Origin: Utricularia gibba
Taxonomy: Eukaryota > Plantae > Magnoliophyta
Assembly (NCBI GenBank): GCA_002189035.1
Contig: CM007991.1
Coordinates: 4,154,001-4,218,000, forward strand
Direction of reading: 5' to 3'
Length of the DNA: 64,000 nucleotides
Position numbers and translations under genes: made by a program. Shown one piece after another: positions 6,871 through 15,003 of the stretch. The stretch's first letter is position 1, and each line of letters begins with the position of its first letter. Under the pieces are notes generated by a model. That model was not told where the DNA came from. It made no database searches and was given only the letters and a program-made list of their open reading frames with translations.

Positions 6871-8914
6871 TCATCCTGCCTGGGATTTCTCCTGGTCACT
6901 AGAACTATTCTGGGAAGCATCAACCATGAAATTTGTCGGAAGTTTGGGGAACTTGAAGACCCTTGGAGATGATGCTAATGATGTATCGGCAAATGATGAT
7001 CCAGGCTTCCTCTTCTGTACGTTTCTTGCAATCTCAACACAGGCTTGATCAACCAATGTTAAGAAATCATTTGCAATCACAAATAGGGAGAGAGGATTTG
7101 TGTCACTTAATGATCCAGGGTAATAGTATCCTGTGGTTTCTTTCAAAAAATCCATTACTCGGGTTCGCTCTTCTTGGATCAGTTTCATCTCAATCTCAGC
7201 TGTTGCAAGGAACCCCCTCATTCTTTTGTAAAATTTTCCTTCAGTTCCACATTGCACCAGCATTTGCTGTACATCAGACATCTGGGTTGCTAAGCTTGAT
7301 ATTGTCTGAAAAAGAGCATCATGGTCTATGGCTGCTACTTTTTTGACGTTGGGGAATTCTGAACTTAGACCACCTACAACTGGCAGTCCCAGTATCATGT
7401 AGTCTCTTTCAGTATCACTGTTCATCACTGAGGAATCGGAATCGCTTTCGCTATAACTCCGGTTTCTGTTAAGCACGCAGCGCTTTCCCTCAGAGCGAAC
7501 TATTTCATGGACAACAAAATGAAGGAGAGTTGTCTTTCCATCATAGCTTTTGACATCAGACAATTTTTTCAGAGCTGTGATGTTGAAAGCCTGCTTCATG
7601 CTTCCTCTTGATGCACTGGAGCTCAATCTTTCCCCAGACTTGAGAACAGCTTCCAAAAGCTTCAAGAACAGCCCACTGGCTCTTAGTTCTTTGCTGGCTG
7701 ACTCAATGAACTGTAACGATTCCTTAACTTGCAAAACCTTGGACTCAAATGTTGTCCTAAAGAGCATCACATTGAGACGAGTGAAGGCAGAAGGCAAATC
7801 CTTGATGAGATGATAGAGGAACGATTCAGCCTCTGCAAGTCTAGCGGGATCTCCATTGAATGCAACAAGTTGAGATGCTTCTTGTTGACTTGGAGCAATT
7901 TTTGCAAGCTTTTCAATGGTGTCTGTGTTTAATCCTTGTCCTTCAATCAAAGCATTAGTGATTTCTTTACCTGTGACACCTAGAGACTTGAGCAAAACTG
8001 CAGTGCTCTGAGATTTAACTGGATCAAAGATGAAAATATGGGAAGGTGGGGATGCTTTTTCCCCTCTGGGAGATTTCCTGTTAGCCGCCACGGATCCAAA
8101 CAAAGCTTCCATGAGATCCCCTTCGTATCTGCATTGACAGAGTAATAAGGCAACATCCTAAACCTAAAAGAAATTGACTTTCGATGGAAAAGATTAGAGT
8201 CTGAAGGAGATACCCTTTTTCAATCTTGCGCAACTCCATAGAATGATCAGAATCTGCAGATTTGGGTATTCTCAATGAAGCATCGGACATCCGCGGTGCC
8301 TGCGGAGGTGCAGACGGCGGAGGGGTTACTTGTGTATTCTCCGACCACACAGGGCTATCGGAAGTAGAAGATTCGCCTAGGAGTAGAGGGACTTTTTGTA
8401 CTTCCGACGGCTTCCTTCTTTCTCTGCCATCAACCGTTACTCTCTTCTCTTGTTCCATGTGCTCCTCCTTCGACCCCTCGTAAATCTGCTTCTTGAAGCT
8501 GACGCTATTGGCTTCCATCTTCTTTAAATACAAAACATCCAAACCATTCTCATCCACGATCACCCCCTTCAAATTCGAATTCACGCGAAGAAACCCATCG
8601 CTCACCGGCAAAGCCTCAATCTTCTCCCCTCCCCAAAACTTCCTTTTTCTGAACCGCATAAACAAAAATAAACCAAGCGCAAATAAACCCACAGTGGCAG
8701 CAAACGTCGCACCTACAGCTATCCCCACGGCCCCACTCCTCGATAGCCCAGTCGCCGTTGGCTCCACCGGCGGTGGCGGCGGCGGCGGAGGCGGTGGAGA
8801 GGTGATAGACGGGTAGTAATACGGGTAATCATATCCCGTCGAAAATGTTTGTGAAAATGCGCCAGTCACATCGGAAACGAAGAGAAGAATCAAGAGACAT
8901 ACGCATGCACCCAT
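6871..8914 (-). CDS. Class I, group Ie formin (FH4/FH7/FH8-like), 652 aa, divergent FH2
   Basis: Exon 1 is 8914-8214 and exon 2 is 8128-6871, with an 85-nt phase-2 GT-AG intron. Order of parts: signal peptide, extracellular S-P10, TM helix (AVGIAVGATFAATVGLFALGLFLFM) plus RFRKRK, GOE motif KGVIVDENGLDVLY, then FH2 (GDLMEALFG, KLSDVKSYDGKTTLLHFVV). Confidence 0.92.
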
Positions 8915-11133
8915 CGGAAGCCCGAACTCGAATCCAACCCTTAATCTCCGTCGACTCAAGCTGCCGCCGTCAGCTCAAAGCGATGCTGGTACCGTGTATT
9001 TAAGCTGCCTTCCGCAGTCCCACTTTTCTCCTCCTGGAACTTCAACAACGAAGAAGATAACTAAAATACATTTTGAAAATTAAGCACCGTCTTTATCTAA
9101 TAATCCAGGTTTAAATTTAATTAATTTCCAAACCATTTTTTATTTAATTTATAGGTATTTATTTTCGCCAGTACATTATAATAAATTTTTTTAATTAAGT
9201 GGCTGGAGTAGATGAGCTCACATTCATTTTCCCCTCAATTTAATTATATTTTTCCCAAAATAATAAAAATTCACAACCAACCACCTTATCCAATCATAAT
9301 TGACGACGCAGTCAACTGTACAGCGCACATCCGGCATTCAAGACGTATGCAATTTACATGATTTAATATTTTCCGATAAATATATAAAAATTAAATTAAT
9401 TTCATCGCTATAATGCTACCAGAAAAAAAATTGAAATAGTTTTTTTTATTGACTTTTGGAAATTAAATAATGGAAATAATAGGAAATGATTTTGTTAAAT
9501 AAGGATGGGGGCGTTAGGGGGGCTGAGGTCAAACTTCCGAGGACTGATAGCCCTGTGTGGTTTGACTTGGGCCAAGTCAAACTTAGAATATTGTATTCTA
9601 ATGGGGCCAAAGTGTAAACTCTAGAAACTTGTGGTTGGCTGACGGGTGCGGTTGGCGCGTCGCATCTAGAACACAGGCGGACGTACAATGAACGTTGGAC
9701 TCGGACACCTTGACTCGGCCTGCGTTTCACACTCTGGACGCCCTAATTGTCAACCCTGATTCAAAACTTGTCTGCATTATTGAGATTTTTAATATTTTTT
9801 ATTTAATTATTTCGCTTTTATGTCTAAATGTTTACTATTTTTTTAATGTAGAATTGGGGTGTCGCTCTCATGGATGATATAGACACTTTGTTTTTTTTAC
9901 CCCAATTGAATATTATTTTTCACAGATTTAATAAAATAACAATATAAAAAAGTTTTAATATTTGGTTTTAATTAGAAATAATATAAAATGGTATGATAAC
10001 GAGGGCACGTTCAACGTTGATTTAAACGAATCCGTGCAAATAAAAAATACCATAATTTATTATATTATTTTAAATTCATTTAATTCCATCATGAAACCTT
10101 TAATTAATTTAAGAACATGTTCACCTTGGGCTTGTAAGCCCATTACGTTTTTAAGCCATAGCCCATTTAACTAATGGGCTGAAAATAAAAGCATTTTGAT
10201 TTCATCAATGGAACATTAATTTTTTTGGGCCGTAGCCCATTTAATTTTCTTTTAATGAGTTGGCTGCTATGGCCCACTATGTGGTCAATGGGTCAAATCG
10301 ATGCAGTGATGTCATTTTGGATGTAGTCAACTACCGTATCTCTGACTTGGACGATATGCGCATGATGCATGTACTTGGTAAAGACTTTTTTTAATAAAAT
10401 AAAATAGCTATGTATGTTTAGGTTTCATTATATAATTTGAGGTGCATCTAATCAATAAATATTCAATTTACTAAATATCAAATATTTTAATTTCTCGTAT
10501 TCATTGATAGTTAACAAATTTTAAATAATTACAATGATGTAAGTTGAAATGAATTTCACACATTGAATTATATTGAGCCTGTTGTATATTTTGAATCTAT
10601 AATTTGAATTATTTAAAATATAATCAATGCTGAGATTATGTAAGAATAAAATCAGTTTAAAATTATAAATTATTTTATATAATAATATAAAGTTATATTA
10701 TAAAATAAATTATATATTATAGAGTTTAATATATTAAATTACATATATAAATTAAAATTATAGGATATATTTTTTAAAGTAGATAAAAATAAACAGAATA
10801 TTTTTTTAATTAATCTATTATTTATGTATTAAAATATAAAATTAAAATTAATAATTTATTAATTTAGTTATAGACTATGAATTTTTAGTTTTGTAGAATA
10901 TAATAAATAATATTTTTAAAATAACTACAATGATGGAAGATGCAATGGATTTCACAAATTGACTTATTTTGAATTGTGTGATTCTTTTTATTAAAAAAAA
11001 TAATGAAATTTATTACATACTTTGAGACAGATATTCTCTTGTCTAACCAATGAAAGATGTCGACGAGGTTAGCCAAACTCGTATCCTTGTATTCACATTC
11101 ACTCTCATTTCTACCGAAAATCAAATTAGTGGT

Positions 11134-12607
11134 TTAGCTCGGGACGATACAGTCCTTGGGGGCGATTCTGTCATCACCCTCCGAAAGCGGATCCTTGGGA
11201 GGCTTTCTGTCGTTTTCTTCGTCCTCGAGGAGCCCCGCCAGAGGAGAAGAATGTGCATCCTTGGGGGTGGTGTTTCTGTCTCCATCCTTGCTCTTGAGGA
11301 GCATCTCCAGTGGGGAATGTGGTGCCTTAGGGAGGGTGCTATCGGGGCCTTTGTCCTTGAGGAGCATCTCCAGTGGAGAATGTGGGTGATCCTTGGAGGG
11401 GCTTTTGTCCGCATCTATGTCCTTGAGGAGCATCACCAGTGGAGAATGTGGAGGATCCTGGAAGGGGTTTGTGTCGGCATCTTTGTCCTTGAGGAGCAAC
11501 GCAAGTGGAGAATGTGGAGGGGGATCCTGGAAGGGGTTTGTGTGGGCATCTCTGTCCTTGAGGAGCAGCGCAAGTGGAGAATGTGGAGATGTGGGAGACA
11601 TGGACGAAGACGAGTCGGAATGAGGGGAATTCAGGGATGGACTTGATGGGGTGTTGTCTCCAGAAGGCGGCGCTTTGTTTGGATTGTCATCGGGTTCTTT
11701 CTGGATGTCCACGGTGGCGCCGCCCTTGTTGTCGTCTGGAGCTTCTCCGAACATGGCCTTTTTCAGTCGTTTGATGTCCGATAGCTTCACTGGCTTCACA
11801 ATGAAATCTTCAGCACCTTCTTCCAAACATCTGGAGAAGAGCGTAACGAAAATCAGAATCTGGTTCACGGGATCCAACAAGGTAGAGCTTGGTCTAACCT
11901 AAAGCGACTAATTCATAGAAGAATGCGCAGACATTCCATACACAGAAGCAGCAAACGAATTGGAACACAGCAACTACTGGAGATCTACCTGTGAATTCTA
12001 GCTAGAACATTTTCAGAAGACATGATCACAACCGGAACTTTTCGAAAAGCAGAGGAGCCCTGATCGAACAGATCGAGTTGAAATCAGTTGAGCCAATCAG
12101 AAACAGTAAGGAAATGCATTTAGCTGAGGAGGGAGCAAGGGAATGACCTTGATCTTTTTCAGCAACTCATAGCCGGTCATTCCAGGCATGCAGTAGTCTG
12201 TGATTATCAGATCCACCTTCAACCTCTGTGTACCAAAAAAATGTTGGATCAATCAATCAAAGGAGCAGAAGTGAATGATAAGAGGTAAGAATTTTACATC
12301 TAATTCAACGGAATTTTCACCCCCATCCAATCCCAGAAACTGCAAAGCTCTCCACCCACTATCCACTGCTGTCACTGAAGCAAAATCAATCATTTAGAGA
12401 CGGAATGGAAACCACACACTTCCAGAAATGAGATTTAAAACCTTTGAAGGAAGTGATTCTCAGCAATCCCTCAATAACTTTTCTGTCAACAAGACTATCA
12501 TCTACAGCAAGAACATGAACTTTCTCAGAATCCCCACGACGACTAGATAATTCATCCACCATCCCTTCACTGCGCTCCAACCGCAAGAAGACGCCATTTT
12601 TCGCCAT
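11134..12607 (-). CDS. ARR3/ARR4: Type-A cytokinin response regulator, ARR3/ARR4-like, 362 aa with long repeat-containing C-terminal tail
   Basis: Exons 12607-12442, 12374-12298, 12225-12148, 12059-11989, 11830-11134, all in phase. Receiver D-D-K residues are intact ([25 protein letters not shown]). The N-terminus MAKNGVF resembles ARR3/4. Confidence 0.95.
11170..11586 (-). repeat. Coding tandem repeat, six imperfect 63-69 bp units
   Basis: Plus-strand core ccttgaggagca...agtggagaatgtgg recurs about every 66 bp. Units translate as PHSPLxxLLKD... Confidence 0.95.
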
Positions 12608-12634
12608 ATTCAGGAACACCCAGGTGACCAAAAA

Positions 12635-13020
12635 AGCTCAAGATTCTGACCTCGAAACTCGCCGCAGAGAACAAAAAAAAGGGGGAAAAGACAACGAAAA
12701 TCCCGTTTTGAAAAAAAATCCCGTGCGCTATAAATAAAACTCCATCCCCATCAGAAGACACCCATTATTCTGTTTTTACGATTCACCCACCAAATCCCTT
12801 ACCAGTACAGGACTTCTCTTTTAAAGGACGAGACTTTCGAAAAAGTAAATCTGGCAAAATCTTCTTTTTTATTGCGCAAAAGCGCATACGGGTGGGATTC
12901 TGAAATCCACTTTGTCGGTTGTGTGATCTCCCGATATCAACCAAAGATCTCGAGACTTGGCAAAAAGTTCAACACCGCAATTATTCCCAGGATCGCGTAG
13001 TAGCGCCGGCAAGATCGAAA
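12635..13020 (-). promoter_or_regulatory. Type-A RR 5' UTR/promoter with clustered type-B response-regulator cores (AGAT[C/T])
   Basis: AGATT/AATCT/AGATC cores at about 12641, 12848, 12858 (extended AAGATTTT on minus), 12925, 12945 (AGATCT) and 13012. A TATA-like element lies at about 12728-12736. Such clusters are typical of cytokinin primary-response genes. Confidence 0.55.
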
Positions 13021-15003
13021 CGAAAACCCAATTTCCGTGGCGGTGAATCGAGATAAATCATTTCCTACGACTACATTGACTAATCCGCCATAGAAGAGAT
13101 TGCATCACTTAAAAGACTCCATTTCTCAGTTGTGCGATCAGAATCCTCATTCCATTTAACCACCACTTGCTAATCCCCTACACCATCCTCTGTTTTCTTT
13201 CCTTCAATGGAATCCCCCCATCTTTAATTTCAGAATATTAAATAAAATATCCCAACACTTAAATTGTTCCATTACTAATTAGTTTATAAAATAATTACAC
13301 ACAAGAAATGTAAATACACGTGTCACTATCAGAGATCTTCCTCAATCTCTAGTGGGGTGTTATCATTTAATTTTTACACATGTACCGTACTCTTTTAGAA
13401 TTTTCCATGTTTTCAAATATTTTTTATTTAAAAAGTTAAATATGCTTTTACAATTTTATTTTATGATAATATTTCTGTCTAATTTTGAATTTTGATGTGC
13501 ATAAAATGTATGTATATTTTTATATTTATTTATTTTCTAATTAAATTATAAAAATAATCAATCGCCTTCTCCATCCCAACGGCTAAAACTATAAATTATT
13601 CATTTTGGAAAAAAAAAATATTTAATTACCATTTGACCCCCGGAAAAGGAGCAAACTGGGCTGGGCTCAAGTGATTTAACAGTCTAAAGCCCACTTATTT
13701 TCCGGAGTTTCCTAGGAGGCCTACTCCCTCTGTGCAATCGTTACCGGAGTTCCGGTTCTATCCACTCTCCACCGTCACGGAGGAATTCTGGATGTACTCT
13801 GAGCGCTCTGTACGCTAACGAATGTCTACAGGATAAGCTCTGTCACTGTTATGTCGTCCGAAGGTATGGCAGAAGCCGCGTACACCGGCGCTTTTTCTGC
13901 GTTTTCGTTCCCAGTGCGTGGGCGTCATCGTTTTCTAGATAAAGGTTGAGGAGAAATGTGGAGGATAGGTGAAGTAAGCTATCGGATAAATGGGTGGCTC
14001 TGCGTTATTCCCCGGCTGACGCTGGTCAAGATCACCACAAGACGATTACGTTTAGGAAGAGTTGTTATCATGGCGGTGGCTTTTTCTGGTTCCGGAGGCG
14101 GTGAGTCTGGGAGTGGCCTTGGTTCCGCTGTTCTTCCTGGGGGTGCCTTTGTTGTTGTCGTTTTTGGTATGCTTTTTTGGGTGGATATTCTTGTCAATAA
14201 TAGCGTTGCATAATTATGTAATTTTGTGGTTGGATATGCTCATTATACGATCTAGAAAGTGGAATGAAATCCATAAAGTTCTGTTTGTCTCGATGCCAAG
14301 GCCAATCCTTTCTTAGTGTAACCGACTTGAATGGTGTATTCTGAATGGGTAATTGATAAACAAATAATTTTGTTATAAAATAATTTAATTTTTATATTAC
14401 ATGATTTTTAAATTACAATTATCAATTAAACTTAATTCAAATGATACAATAAAATAAAAAATAAATATAAGCAATGAAGTCTAGTACTTGATGTTTAAAG
14501 GTTCATACATTCTCATGCCAAAGCTATCCGAATATGTGGATGTGCCAAGCAACACCGGTCGTCTAAATGCTCCATTGCTCCGGGGAAAAGTTTGCGTTCA
14601 CACCTTGGGGACAAGGCAAAGGGAATCAAAGTCTATGCTTAATGATTTTGCAAAGGAGCTTAGGAACTAGAAATATTGAGATTTCAGGTAAGATTCATGT
14701 TTTCTTATTAAATTTTTTCTTAGGATTTATGTATGTGTTTTACAAAACAAGCATGGATGTATAACTTGCTCATGTAATATGCACAAATATTACATATATA
14801 TCCAAAAGTCATGATTTTGAAGATGATGAGCATTTTTTCATGGTAGAGAAAGCGCACCATCAAGTGAAAACTTTTGAGAGATCTATGTTTGTTTGCAAAT
14901 ACATACTCATTGAGAGTTTCTTGGTTTTTTATTCTCTTGTCCCTTCATAGTTTTGGTGTCAATGGGAAAACTGTAGAAGTAATAAAAAATAAGAATCACA
15001 AAG

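Follow-up and report, generated by a model that had tools for sequence, protein, structure and literature searches.

The question raised by this locus is whether a tandem array of peptide units in the tail of a cytokinin response regulator is a set of functional motifs held by selection, or a coding minisatellite tolerated where sequence matters little. The gene lies on the minus strand (12607..11134) of a 64 000-nucleotide stretch of Utricularia gibba DNA, the whole of which is referred to here as the window. It is a five-exon type-A response regulator gene encoding 362 amino acids (counted exon by exon), and all four introns are of the GT..AG type. Its features are as follows.

12608..13407, minus strand: promoter and 5' region, rich in the RGATY cores bound by type-B response regulators
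12442..12607, minus strand: exon 1, with the ATG at 12607, the N-terminal leader and the first part of the receiver domain with its DD pair; aligns to homologues
12298..12374, minus strand: exon 2, receiver domain, with flanking junctions in runs X3 and X11; aligns to homologues
12148..12225, minus strand: exon 3, with the phospho-accepting Asp in ITDYCMPGM and a match to Pfam PF00072
11989..12059, minus strand: exon 4, receiver domain, with junctions 12058>12147 and 11830>11989 in X3 and X11
11134..11830, minus strand: coding part of exon 5, with the end of the receiver (conserved Lys in KPVK), the 220-aa tail and the stop codon at 11136-11134
10991..11133, minus strand: 3' untranslated region, ending where an X3 contig ends, with AATAAA just upstream of that end

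The gene model was compared with contigs from X3 and X11, runs of two different studies whose type was guessed. Spliced contigs from both carry the junctions 12374>12442 (skipping 67), 12225>12298, 12058>12147 (skipping 88) and 11830>11989 (skipping 158), and each joint reads CT..AC on the plus strand, that is, GT..AG on the minus strand. Since exactly the four predicted introns are skipped, these contigs derive from spliced RNA, and the 362-residue length and five-exon model agree with them at every predicted junction. An 831-letter X3 contig (record 8) covers 10991-11821 with zero differences, so the mature transcript includes the complete array together with ∼140 nt of 3' UTR. The first-pass annotation of this DNA had asked for the last exon to be confirmed by RNA, in case transcripts spliced out the array or ended before it; neither is the case. 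The mRNA is covered by several contigs, none spanning all of it, with a break at 11794-11821 in a stretch shared with a paralogue. The gene is expressed and correctly spliced, as expected of a working type-A regulator.

Part of 12608..13407 is 5' UTR, as the X11 contigs extend to 12757. Two tiny upstream ORFs lie on the minus strand at 12728-12765 in a longer 5' UTR form, one of 4 codons with its ATG at 12765, the other of 7 codons with its ATG at 12751 and its stop at 12730-12728; the second is included in the X11 contig alone, which ends at 12757. The 800 nt upstream of the gene contain 21 RGATY cores, the highest count among 316 tiles of the window (mean 7.5, SD 3.3), and the promoter test found no enrichment of the extended cytokinin response motif AAGATYTT. 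Such a density of cores is typical of cytokinin primary-response promoters, and induction by cytokinin is predicted from it.

The receiver domain is well preserved. Separate alignment of each exon fragment with 104 homologues showed agreement at 73 of the 76 columns that are at least 95% conserved; the three deviations compare with a homologue mean of 0.63. The conserved Asp-Asp-Lys residues are all in place, in a 13-residue stretch and in KPVK. Exon 3 alone (26 aa) matches the Pfam family Response_reg (PF00072; 28.4 bits, E = 2e-06), which the homologues also carry, and equals the homologue consensus save for its first residue. A Pfam search of exon 5 (231 aa) at E up to 1 gave no family, and no GARP/Myb or other output domain. 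The protein is therefore what it had been proposed to be, an intact type-A response regulator with an Asp-Asp-Lys receiver and a C-terminal extension that lacks an output domain. The nearest receivers are those of Salvia ARR5-like proteins (∼85% identity), followed by other Lamiales. The likeness to the Salvia miltiorrhiza 'ARR5-like' protein (P0002) and its Lamiales relatives extends beyond a receiver that is 80-85% identical, with D-D-K present and no output domain, to the same leader (MAKNGVF...), a Ser/Pro-rich tail after KPVKL...MFGE and a promoter rich in type-B cores. Among the type-A cytokinin response regulators, the gene is an expressed ARR3/4/5-like paralogue.

Some allelic and paralogous sequences were seen in the same material. 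A haplotype ∼1% different is present in run X5, with 10 differences in 1004 nt (11794-12797), including a cluster of four in intron 4 (158 nt). Of the four that lie in exons, three are synonymous and one changes Glu to Asp, a pattern that fits purifying selection on the receiver. Position 12572 shows two different alleles across runs. Contigs from at least one further type-A regulator of the same organism match 11742-11821 and 12442-12517 with 6-11 differences and then diverge. The start of this paralogue's tail resembles the canonical ...RxQxKxQD of the relatives, so that a canonical-tailed copy coexists with the repeat-tailed gene.

The tail itself is organized as follows.

11185..11586, minus strand: six full in-frame tandem units, each consisting of a (P)HSP site, the core PLxxLLKD and a linker rich in proline and acidic residues
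11586-11518, minus strand: unit 1, 69 bp
11517-11452, minus strand: unit 2, 66 bp
11451-11386, minus strand: unit 3, 66 bp
11385-11323, minus strand: unit 4, 63 bp
11322-11254, minus strand: unit 5, 69 bp
11253-11185, minus strand: unit 6, 69 bp
11137..11184, minus strand: truncated seventh unit (linker part only) and C-terminus, identified by DNA alignment to units 5 and 6

Minus-strand translation of 11134-11829 reproduces, letter for letter, the six units that the first-pass annotation had listed. The consensus is P-H-S-P-L-x-x-L-L-K-D followed by an acidic proline-rich linker, ∼22 residues in all (21-23 aa). A Ser-Pro site followed by LxxLL had been claimed for every unit and is found in all six (PHSP in five, SSP in the sixth); units 1 and 2 both read LALLL, which fits LxLxL as had been noted. 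The truncated seventh unit, the last 48 coding bases, was absent from the earlier list. Its local DNA alignments to units 5 and 6 score 22-24, and 23 of the 28 positions aligned to the unit 5 linker match, with one 3-nt gap. Tandem Repeats Finder detects a period of 66 bp at 11248-11588 (scores 217 and 341), and a 33-nt core occurs five times at three or fewer mismatches, always within the array, where shuffles expect 0 occurrences.

Other reading frames also run through this region. An antisense plus-strand ORF (11050-11646, 198 aa) crosses the array, and further partial ORFs lie in other minus-strand frames. The repeat unit is stop-free in several frames, which accounts for these ORFs, and the 198-aa ORF was accordingly rejected as a gene and taken as a by-product of the stop-free repeat. 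Just downstream of the gene are two large adjoining ORFs of 413 and 292 aa (6871-8959, minus strand).

How unusual is this tail? At 220 aa it is far longer than the tails of its relatives (median 92, maximum 191), as the first-pass annotation had suspected, and its internal periodicity is the strongest of all 121 tails examined. Among the best 120 relatives of P0002, none exceeds 324 aa and none has such an array. A word search with the tail alone at E up to 10 gave no match. An exhaustive HMMER search of 1.84 billion protein representatives returned two spurious repeat proteins, one bacterial and built of LRV/HEAT repeats, the other an internally repetitive carboxylesterase; both are unrelated repeat-on-repeat matches. 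Look-alikes from the ESM Atlas were discarded as meaningless (best score 0.75), and a literature search for repeated type-A response regulator tails found nothing relevant. The view that the array has no described equivalent, and is not common in orthologues, is thus borne out by a tail without relatives in very large protein collections. Small tandem duplications do occur in other type-A tails, for example those of P0038 and P0118.

The idea that the array had been 'grafted onto' the regulator fares less well. The Salvia and Lamiales tails, ∼92 aa long, combine a Ser/Pro-rich stretch with a basic NKRKL cluster and, at the end, a DSPxRR(L/F)K block, whereas the present protein has a 220-aa tail with a 6.5-unit array and neither of the two conserved motifs: in alignment A1 both the NKRKL cluster and the terminal block are absent from the tail. 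Since both motifs have been lost, the change is not a simple addition. We also considered that the unit might be derived from the terminal block (SPxSPTSLDSPxRRxK), and rejected this, as the block matches the tail no better than it matches composition-matched shuffles: with a profile from 78 homologues the best tail stretch scores -0.6 bits, and 418 of 2000 shuffles score as well. MAFFT places unit 1 at the position of the terminal block, which is a positional lead only.

The number of units varies between samples. In X11 one stretch of the array is missing.

11453..11521, minus strand: 69-bp stretch missing in X11, a one-unit in-frame deletion allele (five units)

Record 1 of the X11 contigs contains the joint 11452>11522; the shorter side of the joint is 254 letters long, and 22 letters are common to both sides. 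These 22 shared letters are shorter than the assembler word, which we assume to be 31, and on that assumption a collapse during assembly does not explain the skip. The missing 69 bp are covered by no other X11 contig; the five-unit form is the sole form in the run, which argues against a minor reverse-transcription artefact. The reading frame stays open after the deletion. In a near-identical relative ('organism B'), a 492-letter contig spans 11087-11578 with five differences and no gaps, so that this relative keeps six units. Four of its differences are coding, two synonymous and two non-synonymous, one of the latter changing His to Leu inside one of the cores. The comparison of unit number across samples that had been proposed therefore gives a divided answer: six units are kept in 'organism B', but with five in X11 the number is not strictly fixed. 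With its head-to-tail units of 63-69 bp and whole-unit copy-number polymorphism, the array is a coding minisatellite.

Does selection act on it? The two halves of the unit do not diverge equally. Variable nucleotide columns number 10 of 33 in the core and 23 of 33 in the linker (Fisher p = 0.003), and the core holds 15 of the 51 differences from the unit consensus (simulation P = 0.0012). The earlier observation that the core is kept while the spacers diverge was thus correct. Its reading as selection on the peptide goes further than the counts allow, as the ratio of non-synonymous to synonymous changes, 3:3 for the fixed core, does not differ significantly from the 22:7 of the linker with so few counts, and synonymous variants do not differ significantly either (4/58 in the core, 7/45 in the linker, p = 0.2). 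The lower synonymous trend in the core could also mean homogenisation at the DNA level. Similarly, it is true that the indels preserve the frame, all unit lengths and the population deletion being multiples of 3, but most of these 3n indels duplicate a triplet (TCT TCT, ACC ACC), something that slippage produces unaided. The open reading frame was dropped as evidence of selection, being uninformative (P = 0.33 under random substitution). Overall, the data fit selection on the core peptide without proving it.

A mechanism consistent with these observations can be outlined. Type-A receivers are phosphorylated by histidine phosphotransfer proteins and attenuate cytokinin signalling, and the present receiver would do so as in any type-A regulator. 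In the tail, which is predicted to be disordered, the two family motifs have been lost and a lineage-specific coding minisatellite (6.5 units of ∼66 bp) stands in their place; it would have arisen by slippage or unequal recombination, with whole-unit changes probably ongoing. Each unit would place Ser-Pro immediately ahead of a short amphipathic helix (S-P-L-x-x-L-L-K-D), with the Ser of PxSP as the putative N-cap. PxSP is the optimal consensus of proline-directed kinases, which would make the array a cluster of candidate MAP-kinase or CDK sites, and the S-P-L-E of units 4 and 5 is what we take to be a classical helix capping box. In a single-sequence, low-confidence AlphaFold2 model (mean pLDDT 50, pTM 0.15) the tail has helices at four places only, coinciding exactly with the cores of units 1, 3, 4 and 5. 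The array may then act as a multivalent set of short linear motifs, in which phosphorylation of Ser would tune helix formation and hence binding or turnover of the regulator. That helices form, that the serines are phosphorylated and that partners or stability are affected is what we infer from the motif and the model. Functional constraint on the array, as multivalent phospho-tunable helical motifs that modulate partner binding or turnover, is our leading interpretation, at what we would call even chances.

The main competitor, which falls short of being probable but has to be taken seriously, is that the array is a near-neutral coding minisatellite tolerated in a dispensable disordered tail, with the conservation of the core due to homogenisation or to uneven mutation or alignment. 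Much of the above would be expected in that case. Copy number differs between samples (five or six units), and no other species represented in the collections has the array, not even those of the closest Salvia and other Lamiales homologues. The tail no longer has its canonical motifs, and the receiver departs slightly more from the conserved columns than a typical homologue does (3 deviations, homologue mean 0.63). Few synonymous changes are seen in the core either, slippage favours the triplet duplications that make up most of the 3n indels, and small duplications occur in the tails of P0038 and P0118. Resemblance to coding minisatellites in disordered tails is close, comprising head-to-tail 63-69 bp units, graded divergence, whole-unit variation between individuals and 22 nt of microhomology at the deletion junction. 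However, one half of the present unit is clearly better conserved than the other, which is unexpected for a purely neutral array: linkers differ at as many as about half of their positions, cores remain 73-97% identical, and homogenisation of whole units would not give this contrast. In addition, the reading frame has survived at least five indels, transcripts of the gene exist, and its receiver appears to be under purifying selection (three of four exonic X5 differences synonymous).

Within the favoured interpretation of functional constraint, a stronger version can be formulated in which the array is a selected and multivalent docking module switchable by phosphorylation, its six Ser-Pro-capped amphipathic helices providing a new kinase-gated binding activity whose strength is set by unit number, itself different between accessions. 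We regard this version as speculative and rather unlikely. For the favoured interpretation as such, a precedent is the type-A regulator ZmRR1 of maize, in which a MAP-kinase phosphosite controls proteasomal turnover and a natural 45-bp deletion removes the site (PMC8342596). Shared features are the type-A class, a proline-directed phosphosite outside the receiver (a candidate site in the present protein) and a natural in-frame indel affecting such a site. ZmRR1 has one N-terminal site, Ser15, which is experimentally proven (PMC8342596), whereas the present protein has six predicted C-terminal sites in a tandem array, each beside a predicted hydrophobic helix.

An improbable alternative is that the array recruits co-repressors, with LxLxL in units 1 and 2, or LxxLL in all units, binding TOPLESS-type co-repressors or another transcriptional cofactor. 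The likeness to EAR (LxLxL) repressors and LxxLL cofactor boxes lies in the strings alone, LALLL in units 1-2 and LxxLL in 6/6. To our knowledge, a preceding SP and a following KD are not the flanks of described EAR motifs. LxLxL fits only two of the six units, one of these two is lost in the five-unit allele, and type-A regulators have no DNA-binding domain. EAR-motif adaptors do act in this pathway: TIE1 and TIE2 dampen cytokinin output through type-B regulators (PMC9462699).

It is very improbable that the array folds as a repeat solenoid like the bacterial LRV/HEAT-like proteins. The top match of the exhaustive search was such a protein (P0121, 1371 aa; E = 2.5e-14, 39% identity over five stretches), in which TP..VLELLAKDED resembles, and lines up with, an 11-residue stretch of the plant core, and the unit of 21-23 aa is near the LRV period of ∼24. 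Membership of the LRV family (PF01816) was largely refuted, since Pfam, searched at E up to 1, assigns the tail to no family, a unit contains one hydrophobic segment where an LRV unit has two, and the structural model is of low confidence (pLDDT 50, pTM 0.15). The linkers are rich in proline and charge, the unit length is variable, the tail is predicted to be disordered, and the host belongs to another kingdom. The resemblance is chance or convergence rather than membership, and for P0121 it looks like convergence between short capped helices.

Least credible of all is that assembly created the array, or that the gene is a dying pseudogene copy; DNA run X5 gives no contig over the array and a paralogue with a canonical-looking tail start exists, but contigs of three other studies reproduce the array exactly or with 1 to 5 differences, and the gene has spliced transcripts, an open frame and a conserved receiver.

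The action of type-A regulators beyond phosphate competition, and the role of their variable tails, is a poorly understood field. If the docking module were real, it could recruit a co-repressor, or a degradation or stabilisation factor, to a cytokinin feedback regulator. Of the partners proposed in the first-pass annotation, the KMD F-box proteins have been described to act on type-B rather than type-A regulators. If instead the array is neutral, it would be a clean example of the disordered tails of signalling proteins growing by minisatellite expansion. In either case, six copies of one motif, five- and six-unit alleles and close relatives with canonical tails together form a natural experiment on whether the tail of a type-A regulator can carry a docking or stability code.
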